A stretch of DNA of 64,000 nucleotides, from sequence record OR413585.1. The stretch is one strand, 5' to 3'. This document shows positions 12,991 through 31,185 of the stretch, piece after piece. The notes beneath the pieces are model-generated. The model was not told the origin of the DNA. It was given only the letters and a program-made list of their open reading frames with translations, and ran no database searches. Both the position numbers and the translations under genes were made by a program. Within the stretch, counting starts at the first letter, position 1, and every line of letters begins with the position of its first letter.

Positions 12991-13478
12991 CGACGATAGC
13001 GTTCGATGGAAAAGTCTTAGCTGCTGACGGCCAGTTAACCCGTGGGTCGAATATCTGCAACCTGAATACCCAGAAGTTATTCATCTGCCCTTCTGACGAG
13101 GAATGGTGGATTACTGGTGAACGGATTGTGGCGTTCGGAGTAAGCGGCGACATCACAGGACAATTGGCCCTGCTGGAAACTGTCCGCTTGAGACCTGGTT
13201 ACAAGGGGTTAACGCAAAGCTCGCAGTTACCTGCGAAGATGGATTTTACTTTCCTGATGCTTCTGGCCTCAGGGAAAGCGATAGTCGGTGGGAAGCGTGA
13301 AGACGACGTGACGTTGTGGTGGAGTGAAGCCACACCACCTCTGGCAACCGGAAGTGGTTACGAGTATGCGTTGGGTGCGATGAAGATGGGCGCGAATGCG
13401 GTTCGTGCTGTTGAGATTGCGTCCGAATGCGATATCTACACCGGTGGTGAGATTAGCACTTACGAATTACGGAGGTGA
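12987..13478 (+). CDS. HslV/proteasome-beta-like Ntn-hydrolase protease (163 aa)
   Basis: Start moved to the ATGA overlap at 12987, giving M-TTIAFDGKVLAADGQ; later ATGSGYEYA and IASECDIYTGG match HslV motifs. Confidence 0.75.
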   Translation: MTTIAFDGKVLAADGQLTRGSNICNLNTQKLFICPSDEEWWITGERIVAFGVSGDITGQLALLETVRLRPGYKGLTQSSQLPAKMDFTFLMLLASGKAIVGGKREDDVTLWWSEATPPLATGSGYEYALGAMKMGANAVRAVEIASECDIYTGGEISTYELRR

Positions 13479-13571
13479 ATCATGCGGGAGTCAGAAGCAC
13501 GCAAGCTTGACCCCATCAATCGCCTGCGATAACGGGGTAGCGCATCCGTATAAACACGTTTAAAGAATTCT

Positions 13572-13647
13572 AGGAAAGTGACGCAATTGGTAGCGTACCG
13601 GTCTCCAAAACCGGCTGTTTAGAGTTCGAGTCTCTACTTTCCTGCCA
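13572..13647 (+). tRNA. trnW: tRNA-Trp (CCA)
   Basis: Complete 76-nt cloverleaf: AGGAAAG/CTTTCCT acceptor, CCGGT-CTCCAAA-ACCGG anticodon arm, TAGAG-TTCGAGT-CTCTA T arm, encoded CCA end. Confidence 0.93.
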
Positions 13648-13713
13648 CATTTAGCCAACAAGCCCATGATTCAAAGCAGAGTGACACCGAATGTCTAACT
13701 GCGGAGAATAATC

Positions 13714-13956
13714 ATGAACTTGTATTTGCTAGAACGAACTGACGATATCGGGTATGATGAATTTGATTCCATAATCGTGGCGGCTCCTACGGAGCAAGCC
13801 GCGTGTGCAATTCCTCCCGACCGTGGTCATTGGATGGACTGCCGCTGGTTACCGAAAGAGCGCTGGGATGAAGGGCTTACCCTGACCGTTACTCTTATCG
13901 GTACTACGCATTATCCTGCTGGGACCGTCGTTCATGAATCGTTCAATGCTGGCTAA
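13714..13956 (+). CDS. Hypothetical protein (80 aa), single-domain paralog of the 12415 protein
   Basis: GGAG RBS; MNLYLLE..IIVAAPTEQAA; followed by an AGTGGGC-TTCG-GCCCACT hairpin. Confidence 0.7.
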   Translation: MNLYLLERTDDIGYDEFDSIIVAAPTEQAACAIPPDRGHWMDCRWLPKERWDEGLTLTVTLIGTTHYPAGTVVHESFNAG

Positions 13957-13974
13957 ACAGTGGGCTTCGGCCCA

Positions 13975-15000
13975 CTAACCCTATTCGAGCCGTGATACTT
14001 ACTCAGATTGTGCGGGTTGATGTCCCGCATGAGCCGGTAGCAGCTCAGACCTACGGTAAGCCGATAAATCCGTAGCAGCCAGGTACACAAAGCACCAGGT
14101 CGCTTGTACAGGATGCTGGGTATCTGACCGGTCATAACCTCATTCGATACGAGACACGTTTATGCATGAAATACTCCAGTACATCAGGATGTTGATTTCC
14201 AACGTCCAGTTCTGGGTATTCAATCATGTTTGGTTTACAGGCGATGGGTTTTCCCGCAAGGGCCCCACTTACAGACTGGCGTCTCCACGACAACCGTCCC
14301 TAGGGGACAGGCAAGCACCGGCCCATTAAGCCGCTACGCTACGCCTGTAAATCCACAATCTGATAACCGAATGGGATTGAGTTCCCAGTGTTAGGGTGAC
14401 TGTGTGTCACCGTAGGCGCGGTACCTCATACGGCCGGAACGCCACGAATGTACGTGATAGCGGGTGGTGCTTGGAGGCGCTAAGACCTGACCTTGCGGCC
14501 AGGCTCAGAAGAAGAAGTCCATCACCCGCATTCAGAAATGAATTTAGGTTAATTATTATTTATGGAAGTGATGAAATCGTTTACGTGATAACTTAGTAGT
14601 ATGCAACGAACAATACCAGAGTGACTTTACGAGGTTACTGTGGTATATGTCGGTGCTCCGGGCAACGTGTTGCCGCAGATAAGCCCGAGGGAGCTGAGTG
14701 CACTAACACACGCCGGGATGCACCGGCACCTTACAATGGGAGCGCTGTCACCATCAGTGATGACAGGAGTGAAGGATTCGTACCTCACTCGACTGGGCGG
14801 AAGCCTGGGCGTTCCCCCATCTTCACATCATGGCCGGCTTGCCGGTTCAACGTAGACGTCTCGTAAGAGATTTCCAGTCAGGTAACTGATAACACACCTA
14901 AGCGTCGACCTTGGACGTATGGTGTCTGGTTAAGTCCCCCGAAACGGAAACCAGTAGGGGTGTGGTACGTTGAGTGTAACTATCATGATGCCATGAACAA
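13975..15000 (+). ncRNA. Putative structured non-coding RNA(s)
   Basis: ORF-poor; nested long stems (14232-14353, 14460-14529, 14613-14646) and GNRA loops (GCAA, GTAA). Confidence 0.45.
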
Positions 15001-15001
15001 T

Positions 15002-15071
15002 GGCTTTGTAGCTCAGGTAGGTAGAGCAACCTCTTCGAGGAAGGTCGCCGGTTCGAGTCCGGTCAAAGCAA
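15002..15071 (+). ncRNA. tRNA-like element with truncated anticodon arm
   Basis: GCTTTG/CAAAGC acceptor, GCTC/GAGC D arm and GCCGG-TTCGAGT-CCGGT T arm are normal, but the anticodon arm is only 13 nt (ACCTC-TTC-GAGGA); no CCA. Confidence 0.6.
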
Positions 15072-15150
15072 GAGCAGCGAAGTTAGAGGAATTAACACCC
15101 GACTCATAATCGGATATTTCGACGGTTCGAATCCGTCCGTTTGCTCGCCC
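15072..15150 (+). tRNA. Atypical tRNA with CAT anticodon (Met- or Ile2-like)
   Basis: CCGA-CTCATAA-TCGG anticodon arm, GACGG-TTCGAAT-CCGTC T arm, GTTA/TAAC D stem; 8-bp bulged acceptor stem, no U8, no encoded CCA. Confidence 0.55.
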
Positions 15151-15155
15151 CATTT

Positions 15156-15484
15156 GTGTTATCCTTATCCCGAAGGCATTCGAAATAAGACGCGTATCCA
15201 CACACGGGTCAAGGGTAACACGAACCACTTCCGCGGTCACCGTGTCCATTGCCGCCTACCTGCATGGGCTGTCCTCCGACACGGTGACTTCGGGCCAACT
15301 TACAGGCCAGGGCCGTTTGGGTTTTTCTTACGCATCCATCCAGAGCCACCTCGCGCCCTAGTCTGTATACCCCTTTTCTGTTCCTGGTTTGCCAACTAAA
15401 TCAATTAAGCCTGGTGCGTTGCCCTGGGAACAGAAAAACTTATTCGGTTACACACCGAACCCACCCACGAGGGATATGTCGTGG
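15156..15484 (+). ncRNA. Array of consecutive ~55-65-nt hairpins
   Basis: 11-bp stems at 15156/15211, 15236/15278 and 15374/15427, an interrupted stem at ~15301-15366, and two small hairpins. Confidence 0.45.
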
Positions 15485-15525
15485 ACTACCAATAGAAGCA
15501 GCAATAGTAGTAAGAAGGAAGCAAC

Positions 15526-16347
15526 ATGTTTACAGTTAAACGTGTAATTGATGGTGACCGCATTATTACCGAACATGAAAAAGTTCGTATCGGTGACCGT
15601 AAGTCTCGTGTATTCCGCGAGGCATTAAAAATGCTCGAGAACGAGCGCTTCGACATCGTTGTCGATGATGAAAAGTTAGCCCTTAATCCGGGGTTAAAAC
15701 GCGTTGCCCCTGATGTGCCTGATCCGAACACCATGCACCCGTCCGATTATTACAGTTGGCTAACCCGAATGCTTAAAGATCAGGAAGCTGCCCATTTATA
15801 CCTGAAACAGCTTTTCCCGAATCTGGTTATTCCTGATTTGGACGACGTTGCGTTGTTTAACTGCGATGGACGTGGCTTTATCAGCTATGTGCTGGGTGAA
15901 AAAAGTGATGCTGTTCTGGTACTGGACACAAATTCCCGTATACCAGATGCTGTGGCTAGCATACGTGGTGAAATCATCGGTTACGGTACTCCCCCAGAGA
16001 AATTAGGCTGGTACAAACCATCTCCTGATAGCGACATGGCGATCATTGTCTACACTCAGGAAGAACTGCAACAAGTCGAATTAGAGCCTGGTCCATCTAT
16101 CGAGTTCAGTGATGTCCAGGAGCAGTCGCAGTGGATTAACGGTGAGTCTGTTGTTACTGTTTTAAAAGGCGCTCGCCCTGGCGACCGGTCAGTCGATGAA
16201 CTGATTGGCGCAATGTGCATCGAAGAAGAATCTGGATACGATCCTGATAACCAGATCAGTACCGGTGCGTTGTACGAACTGTTTTATAAAGGCGACGAAG
16301 TCTACGTGGTTAACTCTCACGGTAAGACTACCGACGTCCTTCGCTGA
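15526..16347 (+). CDS. Hypothetical protein (273 aa)
   Basis: AAGGA RBS, intact ORF. Confidence 0.75.
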   Translation: MFTVKRVIDGDRIITEHEKVRIGDRKSRVFREALKMLENERFDIVVDDEKLALNPGLKRVAPDVPDPNTMHPSDYYSWLTRMLKDQEAAHLYLKQLFPNLVIPDLDDVALFNCDGRGFISYVLGEKSDAVLVLDTNSRIPDAVASIRGEIIGYGTPPEKLGWYKPSPDSDMAIIVYTQEELQQVELEPGPSIEFSDVQEQSQWINGESVVTVLKGARPGDRSVDELIGAMCIEEESGYDPDNQISTGALYELFYKGDEVYVVNSHGKTTDVLR

Positions 16348-16437
16348 ATTAGCTAACGCCCAGTAGCTATGTTCCTGACGATTAGCCCTCGTCTGACCTT
16401 GTAAGACCTTGTAGATTTACATGCCAACACCAGGGAA

Positions 16438-16480
16438 GTCCTCACTCTTCGGAGTGAGGACAACTCTTTTATTTTTTTTT
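16438..16480 (+). terminator. Intrinsic terminator
   Basis: GTCCTCACTC-TTCG-GAGTGAGGAC followed by a T-rich tail. Confidence 0.8.
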
Positions 16481-16497
16481 GTATCCCAAATATTCAC

Positions 16498-16512
16498 AGA
16501 TAGATATTACCT
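16498..16512 (+). promoter_or_regulatory. Candidate early promoter/operator AGATAGATATTACCT
   Basis: Variant of a 15-mer repeated at 19464, 27372, 27468, 35928, 37344 and 41087; resembles the phiKZ early motif TATATTAC. Confidence 0.55.
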
Positions 16513-16571
16513 AAGTGAGATGAGAAAGCCTCATCTGAATTCCCCCAACTCGACTATAAAAGGTAAGCATC

Positions 16572-17519
16572 ATGTACAGATCAAGTAATCCTAGTGCTAT
16601 TGAAGGATTAAACCAGGATGGCTTCAGCCTCGCAGAAGCAACCCGCATTCGACCTTTCTTACCTCGCAGATTCTTCCCTTTCGGTTCGTTATACAGAACG
16701 AATTTCGACGCTTGGGAAGCGATACGTGCTGTAAAAGATGCACTACAGTACAAGAACTTCGAATTCCGATTTGTTTTCAAATGGGGCAACGGCGAATTGC
16801 TCCACCACTTCGGATTCCAACAGAACGAGTTCATTGAGTATACCTCACCTACGTACCACACCAGGTTCTTAAGTATCGAATTCGTTCGCCATTTCGGCGA
16901 TGCACTCTTTACGGAACGGGCTACAGATGAAAACCACGGACGTAGGCTGATGTTAACGAACGGCGCACTGCGCATCAAGATGAATCGTTTACGGGAAGCG
17001 TATAACCAGCTTATCAATCCTGAACCGGTAATGTTTCCAACTGTAGCTGATTTGAACATTACACCGCTCCAGTTACCTGTGGATGTGGATAGACCGATTC
17101 TGGCAATCCACGCTCTCCAGGCAGGCTATGCAAACTGGTATAAAGAGCACAGTCTCCCGAACACCAGATTGAACATCGCACCGTTTGAGTTGTGCCTGTT
17201 CTTAACGTTACGCAAACAACTCGAGCCAGAAAACTTAGACTTACGTTATCTGGCTAAAACAGATAGCGGTAGTTACTACCCAACGACCTGGATGCTGGCG
17301 GCTGTACTACCCGGCGGTGAAATTATCGGTAACCCAGTCACCGATGTTCAACAGTTACCATCACCGTTAGCACCACCGAAAGATTCAATCTATCCGTACG
17401 CTTCGTGGTACGCGAGCAGTATTGGCGTGAGATGGTTAATGTTACACGTTCCTGAAGAGGTCTATAATTTATTCCCGCATGAGCAATGGCTCCGTGCGTA
17501 TGAAAATCGGTTTGGTTAG
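16572..17519 (+). CDS. Hypothetical protein (315 aa)
   Basis: AAGG RBS, intact ORF between a promoter motif and a terminator. Confidence 0.75.
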   Translation: MYRSSNPSAIEGLNQDGFSLAEATRIRPFLPRRFFPFGSLYRTNFDAWEAIRAVKDALQYKNFEFRFVFKWGNGELLHHFGFQQNEFIEYTSPTYHTRFLSIEFVRHFGDALFTERATDENHGRRLMLTNGALRIKMNRLREAYNQLINPEPVMFPTVADLNITPLQLPVDVDRPILAIHALQAGYANWYKEHSLPNTRLNIAPFELCLFLTLRKQLEPENLDLRYLAKTDSGSYYPTTWMLAAVLPGGEIIGNPVTDVQQLPSPLAPPKDSIYPYASWYASSIGVRWLMLHVPEEVYNLFPHEQWLRAYENRFG

Positions 17520-29461: not shown

Positions 29462-30829
29462 GTGAGAAAGGTACCAAAATTCTACGGAATATCCGGCCGG
29501 TTGGTTAGTCAGGATAACTATTTGTCCGATTTGCAAATAGAAGCTGCTGCCAAAGGTATTAAACCACCCACTATTATTAACGATGTCGCCGTTAACGGGG
29601 ATGCGATCGAGGTTGCTGAACTTATCGATCGCATGGTACAGAACAGAATCGTTGACGAAGAACTGAACTCTGCACCGATTTGTAGTTTGGATTGTCCGGC
29701 ACCGATCGCGCATCGTTACAATCTCGGTTGTAAGTGTCCGACGTGTGGCTATGTTGTAACTGAACATCGAATTGAATCCGATGTCTGGTTACGTGCACCC
29801 GATGAAATGGGTAACTTCGTCAACCCACGATTCTGGGCAATGTTCAATGCTTTCTTTAATAGCAAGTTGAAGAAGTTTGAACGTAACAAGGTCACTATCG
29901 AACGCGGTAATGACTTGATGATGTGGATGATTGACCCGTATTACCGTATAGAAGAACCAGACGGTAAACGCGCACATGCTGTGAAACGTGTATTGGAAGA
30001 ACATGGTTTCGTTCGTGGCTTGCGCAATCTGGTTGATAACCACGTTAGTATCTTTAACATCCTTACCACGCCAGAAGCCTGGAAGGAAATCTTCGCACCT
30101 AATCGGCATAACGCCGCTGAAGGTGAACGCTTACGTTTACAATGGAAGGAGCTATTCGAAACGCAACGTCACGCATTCTTCCCAAGACATTTACCGCTAA
30201 TCTCCTCTAAACTTATCGTTACTGAGGAAGGTCGTCGTGGTGTCATGGTAGACCCAGTGTTCACGGGTGCTATTGATGCGGTGAAAAATATCGCGTTGCT
30301 CTATACGCGGCGTAAAGCGATCGAACCACGTTTTCTGATTAGTCGCGCTTTGAAGGCGAACCGTCAGTTAACGTACTTCCACATGGACTTCCGTCGTGAG
30401 TCTATGGAAGGTAAACCGGGTGACTATCGTGCGAAATTGGGTTCTACCCATATCCCGTTCGGTGGTCGTGCAACCATCTCACCTATCTCAGAACCACACG
30501 ATGCCTGGAAGTTAAAAGCACCGTGGCGTTGGATGGTTGGGTTGATGTCGACCCACATCGAGAACAAACTGCTACGACGGGGTTATTCGTCACGGCAGTG
30601 TGAACGTATCGTTGCGAAAGCGGCAATGCAGTATGACCCGCTTGTAGACGAAATCTTTAAAGAACTGATTCGTGAATCCCCAGGCGGTCTTGGGATCATG
30701 GTCATACCGTTACGTAACCCAACGCTGGTACAGTTGTCTATTCAAACGCTGTACATCGATGAAGTTGTTACCGATGTTAACCAGTGTTCGCTGCGTATCT
30801 CTGACCGTGTGATCAAGATGGCTAACGGT
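29462..30829 (+). CDS. Non-virion RNA polymerase beta' N-terminal subunit, exon 1
   Basis: Zn-ribbon CKCPTCG, GGRATISP and LRNPTL motifs; the exon ends at ..MANG just before the catalytic DFDGD. Confidence 0.85.
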
Positions 30830-31185
30830 TCGAAAAGAGCCCCATCGGACGGGAAACCTCTGATGCGTATTCTCCTGAAATGCTGGGAAACCCTAAAGCG
30901 TATCTACCAGAAATGGGGACGAAAGTCTGAAACAACAGATACGATGACCTACGCTAAACAATACTGCTAAGGGTTGTGTTGATGGGTAATCAGCAGCGAA
31001 GCCTCGTGAGAGGAACGTTCAACGACTATCGCTGAAATGCGAGTAGGGGTCCTAGTGGACTTCGAAGTGGGAGAACACCTAAGGCGAAAGCTATGGTGAA
31101 GATATAGTCTGTGCCTTATCGAGAGATAAGGAGGGTGTCTTAGCACACCTGCTGTATACGGAAACGGTATACGGTGGACAAACAG
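30830..31185 (+). mobile_element. Group I intron (IA-like, 356 nt, no homing endonuclease ORF)
   Basis: P1 GGT|TC-GAAAA-GAGCC with U.G pair; P AAATGCTGGGAA; Q AATCAGCAGC; R GTTCAACGACTAT; S AAGATATAGTCT; P3 TTCTCC/GGAGAA; P7.1 and P7.2 hairpins; terminal G. Splicing restores the frame N-G-D-F-D-G-D. Confidence 0.9.

Follow-up and report, generated by a model that had tools for sequence, protein, structure and literature searches.

A conserved row of RNA hairpins behind tRNA-like elements in SPN3US-like jumbo phages, a candidate cassette of structured small RNAs

The object of this analysis is a row of RNA hairpins at positions 15153–15484 of a 64,000-nt stretch of sequence record OR413585.1 (hereafter, the window). 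The window belongs to SPLA5c, a jumbo phage of Salmonella that resembles SPN3US and forms a nucleus: the segment searched (13000–16400) was identical at the same coordinates and shared 94–97% identity with SPN3US and other relatives of the genus Seoulvirus. The array comprises four long hairpins, U1–U4 (64–72 nt), and two short ones, U5 and U6. It lies within a stretch poor in open reading frames (ORFs) (13957–15525), behind two elements resembling transfer RNA (tRNA). Its units are autonomous RNA structures of the + strand maintained by selection, and U1–U4 are kept independently of the gene downstream. We favor, with moderate confidence, the explanation that the array is a polycistronic cassette of structured small RNAs, which forms the 3′ trailer of a tRNA/tRNA-like operon and is matured together with the tRNAs. 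In the genome of SPN3US, which was searched in place of the window's own assembly, the array occurred once.

All units were found on the + strand, and every stem listed in a preliminary description of the window was present where it had been placed. U1 (15153–15224) is a 72-nt hairpin with an outer helix of 14–16 bp, in the core of which GTGTTATCCTT (15156–15166) pairs with AAGGGTAACAC (15211–15221), including one G·U pair; conserved parts of its interior are a small GAA/UUC hairpin and UCCC...GG(G)UC, and CCACU follows. U2 (15230–15294, 65 nt) has a 16-bp outer helix with a perfectly paired core (GTCACCGTGTC, 15236–15246, with GACACGGTGAC, 15278–15288), an internal loop that is asymmetric (CAUU / CCUCC), and, at the apex, a stem of 5 bp with the loop CCUGCA; it is followed by CCAACU. 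U3 (15301–15367, 67 nt), the ends of which read TACAGGC...GTCTGTA, consists of nested helices with a conserved GGUUUUUCU...CCAGAGCC interior, and is followed by UACCCC. U4 (15374–15437, 64 nt) combines a 14-bp outer helix, again with a perfect core (TTTTCTGTTCC, 15374–15384, with GGAACAGAAAA, 15427–15437), with a conserved apical region GCCAACU...GCCUGGUGYGUUG; ACUUA stands behind it. The two small hairpins that had been reported to follow are U5 (15443–15459; UUCGGU-UACAC-ACCGAA, then CCCAC) and U6 (15465–15484), a 6-bp hairpin with the loop GGGAWAWG, in which GGGA is invariant.

A typical module is thus tRNA-sized, with a long closing helix and usually UU at its start and AA at its end. The common architecture suggested earlier was retained, with a correction of the lengths: units of about 53–66 nt had been proposed, but the helices are longer, and with the basal U-A and G·U extension U1–U4 measure 72, 65, 67, and 64 nt. 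Outer helices of 12–19 bp were found across all units and lineages, in agreement with the coaxial helix of RNase P hairpin substrates, which measures about 12 bp or more. The unit sequences are unrelated, as had been noted: none is shared between units, and the sole direct repeat in 14990–15530 is the T-arm of the two tRNA-like elements. The interiors, described previously as C-rich, are so only mildly (113 C and 86 G in 380 nt).

Folding of the 380-nt + strand segment gave −132.2 kcal/mol, compared with −106.3 ± 5.5 kcal/mol for shuffled sequences (z = −4.73; 0 of 100 shuffles as good), whereas the − strand folded no better than its own shuffles (z = −1.22). Only three perfect inverted repeats of at least 11 bp with a spacing of 15–70 nt were present in the 64-kb window, two of them being the cores of U2 and U4.

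Comparison with relatives, in which the units were recognized between genera by their conserved interiors, provided strong evidence for the proposed pairing. In U1, 94.7% of alignment cells were paired and six pairs were changed on both sides, and the covariation score was reached by 0 of 500 shuffles. For U2, the corresponding values were 98.1% and 11 of 16 pairs (matched by 0 of 500 shuffles), and pairing fell to about 40% in slid controls. In U6, 97.6% of cells were paired and both partners had changed in five of six pairs (0 of 500 shuffles). U3, for which only four sequences were available, showed 92.4% paired cells and three pairs changed on both sides, with micro-covariation in the metagenomic variant L020. 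U4 was too divergent between genera for an alignment on sequence alone, from which RNAalifold obtained no pairs; this unit was assessed by base-anchored helix counts, which revealed an ungapped outer helix of 12–19 bp in each of the 10 homologues, with both-side differences at 5–10 positions between lineages and the GCCUGGUG core kept. The internal loops remained nearly constant while the stems covaried heavily. In U2, 16 of 30 interior columns were invariant versus 5 of 32 stem columns, so that the comparison of stems and loops recommended in the preliminary description found the interior to be the more invariant part. Across U1–U3, pairs kept through G·U made up 52 cells and A·C combinations only 5; selection therefore acts on the RNA of the + strand, on which the tRNAs and the flanking genes also lie.

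Among the window phage, SPN3US, and Proteus phage 7, the 332-nt array was 100% identical. Between the same phages, the gene at 15526–16347 (hereafter, gene 15526) had 99–108 differences in 822 nt (about 88% identity), and the gene at 16572–17519 (gene 16572) had 109 differences in 948 nt. The other non-coding parts of the stretch were 96.6–98% identical and also exceeded the genes; part of the identity is therefore a general property of the locus, of which the array is the extreme. As judged from these comparisons, the array is under purifying selection.

In relatives, the homologous stretch contains up to 13 annotated tRNAs, the last of which was tRNA-Asn in 13 of the 13 relatives examined. 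Behind it lie 235–550 nt of DNA, annotated as empty or dubiously annotated, which fold as a similar row of hairpins. The position behind the last tRNA or tRNA-like element was conserved in all four genera, Seoulvirus, Machinavirus, Erskinevirus, and Wellingtonvirus, and so was U1. The other units were distributed unevenly: U2 (UUGCCGCCUACCUGCAUGGGCUG) was found in Seoulvirus and Machinavirus, and a second U2-type unit (GUUAGUCUCCAGRC) in SPAsTU and Erskinevirus; U4 (GCCUGGUG) in Seoulvirus, Machinavirus, and Erskinevirus; U3 is shared with pEa_SNUABM_29 and, outside Seoulvirus, was found only in Wellingtonvirus (Kwan, pEa_SNUABM_11), another unit standing in its place in SPAsTU. U5 is confined to Seoulvirus, the three lineages of which have the stems GGU/ACC, GAC/GUC, and GGC/(A)CC, and is absent from Machinavirus. 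U6 occurs in Seoulvirus and Machinavirus and was not seen in the arrays of Erskinevirus or Wellingtonvirus. The resulting orders are U1-U2-U4-U6 in Machinavirus, U1-U2b-U4 and a terminator in Erskinevirus, and U1′-U2c-U3, further units, and then a terminator-like stem (read by eye) in Wellingtonvirus. That units have been gained, lost, and swapped singly speaks for autonomous modules and against one large fold.

The pair of tRNA-like elements that had been noticed in front of the array was confirmed by Rfam, though rejected by ARAGORN. Element 1 (15002–15071, + strand; 40.9 bits) is degenerate; it is kept in SPAsTU (L003:3242-3278 and 3304 onward), upstream of a real tRNA-Asn. Element 2 (15074–15152, + strand) scored 30.6 bits at 15074–15145; it has a CUCAUAA anticodon-type loop, and its terminal CCA (15150–15152) abuts U1. 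Its homologues in pEa_SNUABM_29 and Asesino are annotated as tRNA-Ile2/Met(CAU); as read from the sequence, neither the acceptor arm nor the D arm of the window copy is paired. Elsewhere, element 2 has a perfect 7-bp acceptor stem (Caitlin) or a long extra arm (ChrisDB and pEa4), and the pair is conserved between genera as two non-canonical RNAs (L003:3242-3417, L005:3343-3480, L013:2270-2432). Because the tRNA-like pair of SPAsTU stands upstream of a real tRNA-Asn (local BLAST), SPN3US-type phages have precisely lost tRNA-Asn, and therefore U1 now abuts element 2. The only tRNA called by ARAGORN within the 64-kb window is tRNA-Trp (13572–13647).

The junctions between the hairpins resemble those between tRNAs. 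All annotated tRNAs of the related clusters encode CCA, which is followed by 2–6 nt of A, C, or U up to the next tRNA; the gaps within these tRNA arrays are likewise occupied by unannotated tRNA-like and cloverleaf-like RNAs. In the hairpin rows, a stem is mostly followed by CC(A), 1–3 nt of A, C, or U, and the next stem, the linkers being short and G-free. Examples are ...CGAA|CCACU|UCCG... and ...CGGG|CCAACU|UACAG... in the window and ...AGAA|CCAAA|U... and ...GGUA|CCAU|C... in Machinavirus. Directly 3′ of the distinct long hairpins, CC was found in 33 of 48 cases versus 21% of random positions, and CCA in 21 of 48 versus 9%, these counts not being phylogenetically independent. The enrichment is partly inherited and not universal, and we therefore take it as suggestive only.

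Contigs from RNA libraries of an approximately 97% identical phage run from 14592 or 14630 to 15736 in one piece and include the tRNA-like pair, the array, and the 5′ part of gene 15526. Such contigs attest to presence and contiguity in RNA only; their depth is flat by construction, and they reveal no ends within the array. The unit is closed by an intrinsic terminator called by the terminator scan at 16438–16461 (+ strand), and no terminator-like site was called on the + strand within 15146–15525. An AT-rich stretch (14531–14600) may be the start of the transcription unit. It contains a sigma-70-like match, TTCAGA-17-TATTAT, and the contigs with the array begin just downstream (14592–14630); the match itself means little because these phages use their own RNA polymerases. 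Read-through into the adaptor placed the 5′ end of an RNA near 16562, shortly upstream of gene 16572, the depth of which was much the highest. The intergenic region 16348–16571, which holds the terminator, was 97.8% identical to SPN3US, and both flanking genes were about 88% identical.

Gene 15526 (15526–16347, + strand) belongs to the same transcription unit and encodes a protein of 273 amino acids (PHROG 17697/1453, function unassigned). The protein had no match in Pfam and no relative in the PDB, and its Atlas matches were under the lead threshold. Between the array and this gene lies an A-rich, unstructured leader (15485–15525, + strand) with the Shine–Dalgarno sequence GAAGGA (15514–15519); its motif CAAUAGAAGCAGCAAYAG...AGGA is conserved in Seoulvirus and Machinavirus. 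Homologues of the gene are absent from Erskinevirus (Asesino) and Wellingtonvirus (Kwan). In Asesino, a terminator called by the scan (L006:4396-4419) stands directly after the array and shares the CACUCUUCGGAGUG stem core with the terminator at 16438–16461; in Kwan and pEa_SNUABM_11, a comparable G+C stem with a T-rich tail was recognized by eye at the same place, although the scan did not call it. Because U1–U4 are kept without the gene, in the order array and then terminator, they are not the leader of gene 15526 but a part of the tRNA operon. U6 and the A-rich leader, in contrast, were confined to genera with gene 15526; U6 is therefore probably part of the leader of this gene rather than of the trailer cassette.

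Known RNA families did not account for the array. Rfam 15 (4227 models) gave no match to the array of the window at gathering or permissive thresholds, and none to the homologous arrays of SPAsTU, Caitlin, Asesino, and Kwan at E-values up to 0.5. Within 15146–15525, no tRNA was detected by Rfam RF00005 at E-values up to 5 or by ARAGORN, and the units proved to be single long hairpins. The array had no blastn match in all complete genomes of Escherichia coli, which were searched for mimicry of host sequences. A degenerate U1 motif retrieved only close relatives of SPN3US and Asesino from IMG/VR and JGI metagenomes. The array of Kwan, which diverges most, matched Wellingtonvirus alone in blastn, and a search for related loci with the neighboring protein of 315 amino acids returned only SPN3US itself. 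As far as the searched databases show, the family appears confined to the SPN3US-like clade. The papers found on phiKZ, 201phi2-1, and phiKZ-type transcriptomes and the jumbo-phage reviews do not describe the array.

Several further identities were considered and rejected. A clustered regularly interspaced short palindromic repeat (CRISPR) array, already dismissed in the preliminary description, is contradicted by the absence of any array-type direct repeat in 14990–15530, where only the T-arm of the tRNA-like elements recurs. Protein coding was rejected since stop-free stretches change frame and strand between relatives. The units are not intrinsic terminators, for which no + strand site was found in 15146–15525, and no cis-regulatory family of Rfam was matched. 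A CsrB-like sponge was rejected for the array as a whole because a conserved loop GGA is present in U6 only and not in U1–U4.

The following scheme would account for the cassette. U1–U4, with U5, would be made on a + strand transcript shared with the tRNA-like elements, which in this phage would extend through gene 15526 to the terminator at 16438–16461. From the junction grammar, host nucleases of tRNA maturation are expected to cut at the unit junctions: RNase P would act where each helix begins on its 5′ side, in the manner known from substrates of the hairpin-plus-RCCA and pre-4.5S types, with RNase E and exonucleases trimming the 3′ side. The products would be stable hairpin RNAs of about 65–75 nt. 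Their function would reside in the invariant loops, internal and apical, namely CCUGCAUGGGCUG in U2, GCCUGGUG in U4, and GGUUUUUCU...CCAGAGCC in U3, which may bind protein or RNA in trans. U6 and the A-rich leader would instead serve gene 15526, possibly as a CsrA-bound pair of GGA hairpin and Shine–Dalgarno sequence. In CsrA-controlled leaders, one GGA stands in a hairpin loop and another in the Shine–Dalgarno sequence; U6 is similar in its invariant loop GGA, with the second GGA in the Shine–Dalgarno sequence about 35 nt downstream.

In its general form, the earlier proposal of a polycistronic small-RNA cassette fits these results: the array is modular, its independent, similar-sized + strand units share one transcription unit with the tRNA-like elements, the stems covary, units are gained and lost by lineage, and the punctuation is of the tRNA style. 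Its more specific suggestions fared worse. The CCUCC segments, interpreted as anti-Shine–Dalgarno-like, amount to one occurrence where about 0.7 would be expected by chance (our own estimate, not a tool result), within a pyrimidine run that is only loosely conserved. For the guide or antisense role no target was found. Nothing specific to RNase III was seen; this enzyme may take part, but the grammar of the junctions speaks for RNase P and RNase E to at least the same degree.

A number of observations weigh against the cassette. The contig depth over the array equals that over the 5′ part of gene 15526 and is 20–100-fold below that of gene 16572, in the range of neighboring parts of low expression; there is thus no sign of an abundant stable species, although standard RNA libraries lose small structured RNAs. 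No partner or target was identified. A CCA tail, though frequent, is missing from a number of units: behind U1 stand CCC in SPAsTU, ACCU in pEa29, and CACA in Stratton, and in the window UACCCC stands behind U3 and ACUUA behind U4. The CC and CCA counts lack phylogenetic independence, no T-loop-like element caps the helices, and the covariation comes from 4–11 distinct sequences per unit within one phage clade.

The strongest competitor, possible but clearly less probable than the cassette, is that the hairpins are only cis-acting elements of processing or stability, that is, nuclease sites (for RNase III within the long helices, as at the R-sites of phage T7, or for RNase E in the linkers) or barriers to exonucleases or 5′-end attack, which separate and protect the tRNA part and the messenger RNA (mRNA). 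The array lies exactly between the tRNA-like elements and an mRNA, and the contig depth over it is no higher than over the downstream gene. The RNase III signals of phage T7 (R0.3, R0.5, and R1.1 among others) are hairpins of about 60 nt between phage cistrons, with a lower stem, an internal loop, and an upper stem. U2 has this layout, its internal loop being asymmetric, and like the T7 signals the array hairpins stand between cistrons of a polycistronic transcript. All linkers are unpaired and lack G, and ACUU occurs in three of them, features compatible with the preference of RNase E. However, a barrier needs only a stable helix, yet the interiors of U2 are its best conserved part; moreover, four to six distinct units are kept in series, and the array is retained before a terminator hairpin in phages that have no downstream gene to protect. 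The T7 signals, in addition, are spread between protein genes, whereas the array is stacked behind tRNAs and its loops are more conserved than its stems.

The other readings, namely leader, decayed tRNAs, DNA signal, and chance, are each contradicted by a tested feature. That the whole stretch is a regulatory 5′ untranslated region of gene 15526 (a leader, a riboswitch-like sensor, or a translational control element) is improbable. Physically it is one in this phage, where no + strand terminator separates the array from the gene, one RNA sequencing contig runs from the array into the gene, and both the leader and U6, the loop of which has an invariant GGGA, are restricted to genera with the gene; but Erskinevirus keeps U1 and the U2- and U4-type units, and Wellingtonvirus keeps U1′ and U3, and neither genus has the gene. 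The array stays with the last tRNA, not with the gene, and has no cis-regulatory match in Rfam. The preliminary description had named a mere 5′ untranslated region with unconserved stems as one outcome that would speak against it; instead, the stems covary, and U1–U4 persist without gene 15526. Decay of tRNA genes, leaving neutral remnants of a shrinking tRNA cluster, could be imagined because SPN3US-type phages have lost nearly all tRNAs of their relatives' locus, including the precise loss of tRNA-Asn, and because the units are tRNA-sized and spaced like tRNAs. In relatives with full tRNA sets, the same units stand behind tRNA-Asn and thus did not arise by decay; heavy compensatory change, 100% identity where neighboring genes diverge by 12%, and the lack of a tRNA signal at E-values up to 5 make this origin very unlikely. 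Equally hard to credit is a function of the inverted repeats as DNA, whether as palindromes bound by a protein, as cruciforms, or as a signal for an origin or for packaging. Inverted repeats with 11 perfect bp are indeed rare in the window and two of them fall in the array, but the preponderance of G·U over A·C (52 versus 5 cells) is sensible only for a + strand RNA, the − strand does not fold above its shuffles, and the orientation is always that of the tRNAs.

Small non-tRNA RNAs of phage tRNA clusters are already known as a kind. The T4 RNAs RNAC and RNAD, the stable "species 1 and 2" RNAs, number two and are about 120–140 nt long. They are made from the T4 tRNA region, and their roles are unknown (PMC3014915, PMC9697503). 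Like them, the array would represent non-tRNA small RNAs in or at the end of the tRNA cluster of a lytic phage, co-transcribed with it; it stands at the end of the cluster, on the same strand, and in one contig with the tRNA-like pair. Unlike RNAC and RNAD, it consists of four to six shorter tandem hairpins with CC(A) punctuation and belongs to a nucleus-forming jumbo phage; no sequence relation is expected.

Among the RNAs that RNase P cuts are hairpin models, pre-4.5S RNA, and the M3 and C4 RNAs of phages, and the enzyme makes use of an RCCA contact (PMC11143913). Its non-tRNA substrates (minihelix, pre-4.5S, phi80 M3, P1/P7 C4) share with the units a long closing helix; their unpaired (R)CC(A/C) tail has a counterpart behind many, though not all, of the units, which stand directly behind a preceding tRNA-type 3′ end. 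The units differ from them in that some lack the CCA tail, their first pair is mostly U-A, a T-loop is missing, and the Rfam models of those RNAs give no match. By-products or punctuation of tRNA maturation are also represented by spacer and trailer small RNAs of tRNA operons such as 3′ETS-leuZ of E. coli, by mitochondrial transcripts, and by MALAT1/mascRNA. Plant t-elements are a further example (PMC1920247). As proposed for the array, such RNAs are functional or end-defining by-products of tRNA maturation released from a shared precursor, but they are single short unstructured or tRNA-like pieces, whereas the array is a series of long hairpins with conserved loops after the last tRNA.

The surroundings of the array contain further structured RNAs. 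A block of about 240 nt (14300–14535), which heads the tRNA region, is conserved more widely than any other part of the locus. RNAalifold predicted 57 pairs in it from seven phages, 17 of them with compensatory change; it includes the strongly conserved strings GGUGCUUGGAG and GAAGAAGUCCAUCA and had no Rfam match. Adaptor read-through in the RNA sequencing contigs at 14476 suggests an abundant discrete RNA end. A 79-nt cloverleaf-like three-way junction (14738–14820), followed by CCCA, has the closing stem GGGAGCG/CGUUCCC, arms of 5–6 bp, and one GGAA tetraloop, and was called by neither ARAGORN nor Rfam. It is 95% identical to SPAsTU L003:3111-3197 and 91% identical to Asesino L006:3538-3621, and the Asesino copy exactly fills the slot between tRNA-Ile and tRNA-His. 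This element makes up the first 87 nt of a 264-nt segment (14733–14996), which is present in the window and in SPFM-type phages, absent from SPN3US, SEGD1, and JN03, and skipped by one RNA-library contig (X13). Hypothetical coding sequences have been annotated over the structured RNAs: gp263 of SPN3US (15013–15249, − strand) opposite the tRNA-like pair and U1, gp20/gp21 of Asesino over the array and terminator (L006:4142-4546), and the long start of gp19 of Machina; all of these are probably spurious. Upstream of the ORF-poor stretch lies a small conserved ORF (13714–13956). Elsewhere in the window, a group I catalytic intron was identified at 30810–31131 (full Rfam model RF00028, 67.9 bits).

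With these neighbors in mind, a bolder form of the cassette can be drawn up, which we regard as rather doubtful: SPN3US-like phages would encode undescribed, tRNA-sized, CC(A)-tailed hairpin RNAs in "tRNA slots", matured by the tRNA machinery and acting in trans as mimics of the acceptor end or minihelix or as loop-specific decoys, and forming an "RNA island" together with the 240-nt RNA and the cloverleaf-like element. Possible roles in trans are the titration of a host factor or of a defense nuclease that attacks tRNA 3′ ends, or the binding of a phage protein.

A phage nucleus is formed by SPN3US and by the related Erwinia phage Asesino (PMC13282480). The noncoding RNA of these phages is little known, and the papers found on phiKZ-type phages name only a few candidates without functions. 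What is new here, on comparative grounds, is a set of at least five structured RNA families with strong comparative support, none of which is represented in Rfam. The retention of the array in SPN3US-type phages, from which nearly all tRNAs of the locus have disappeared, suggests that it does something that tRNAs do not. If its units are released as small RNAs, they would show how tRNA-processing enzymes are recruited to non-tRNA products, and the array would provide a tractable system for the role of small RNAs in phage tRNA clusters, a question unanswered since T4 RNAC and RNAD.

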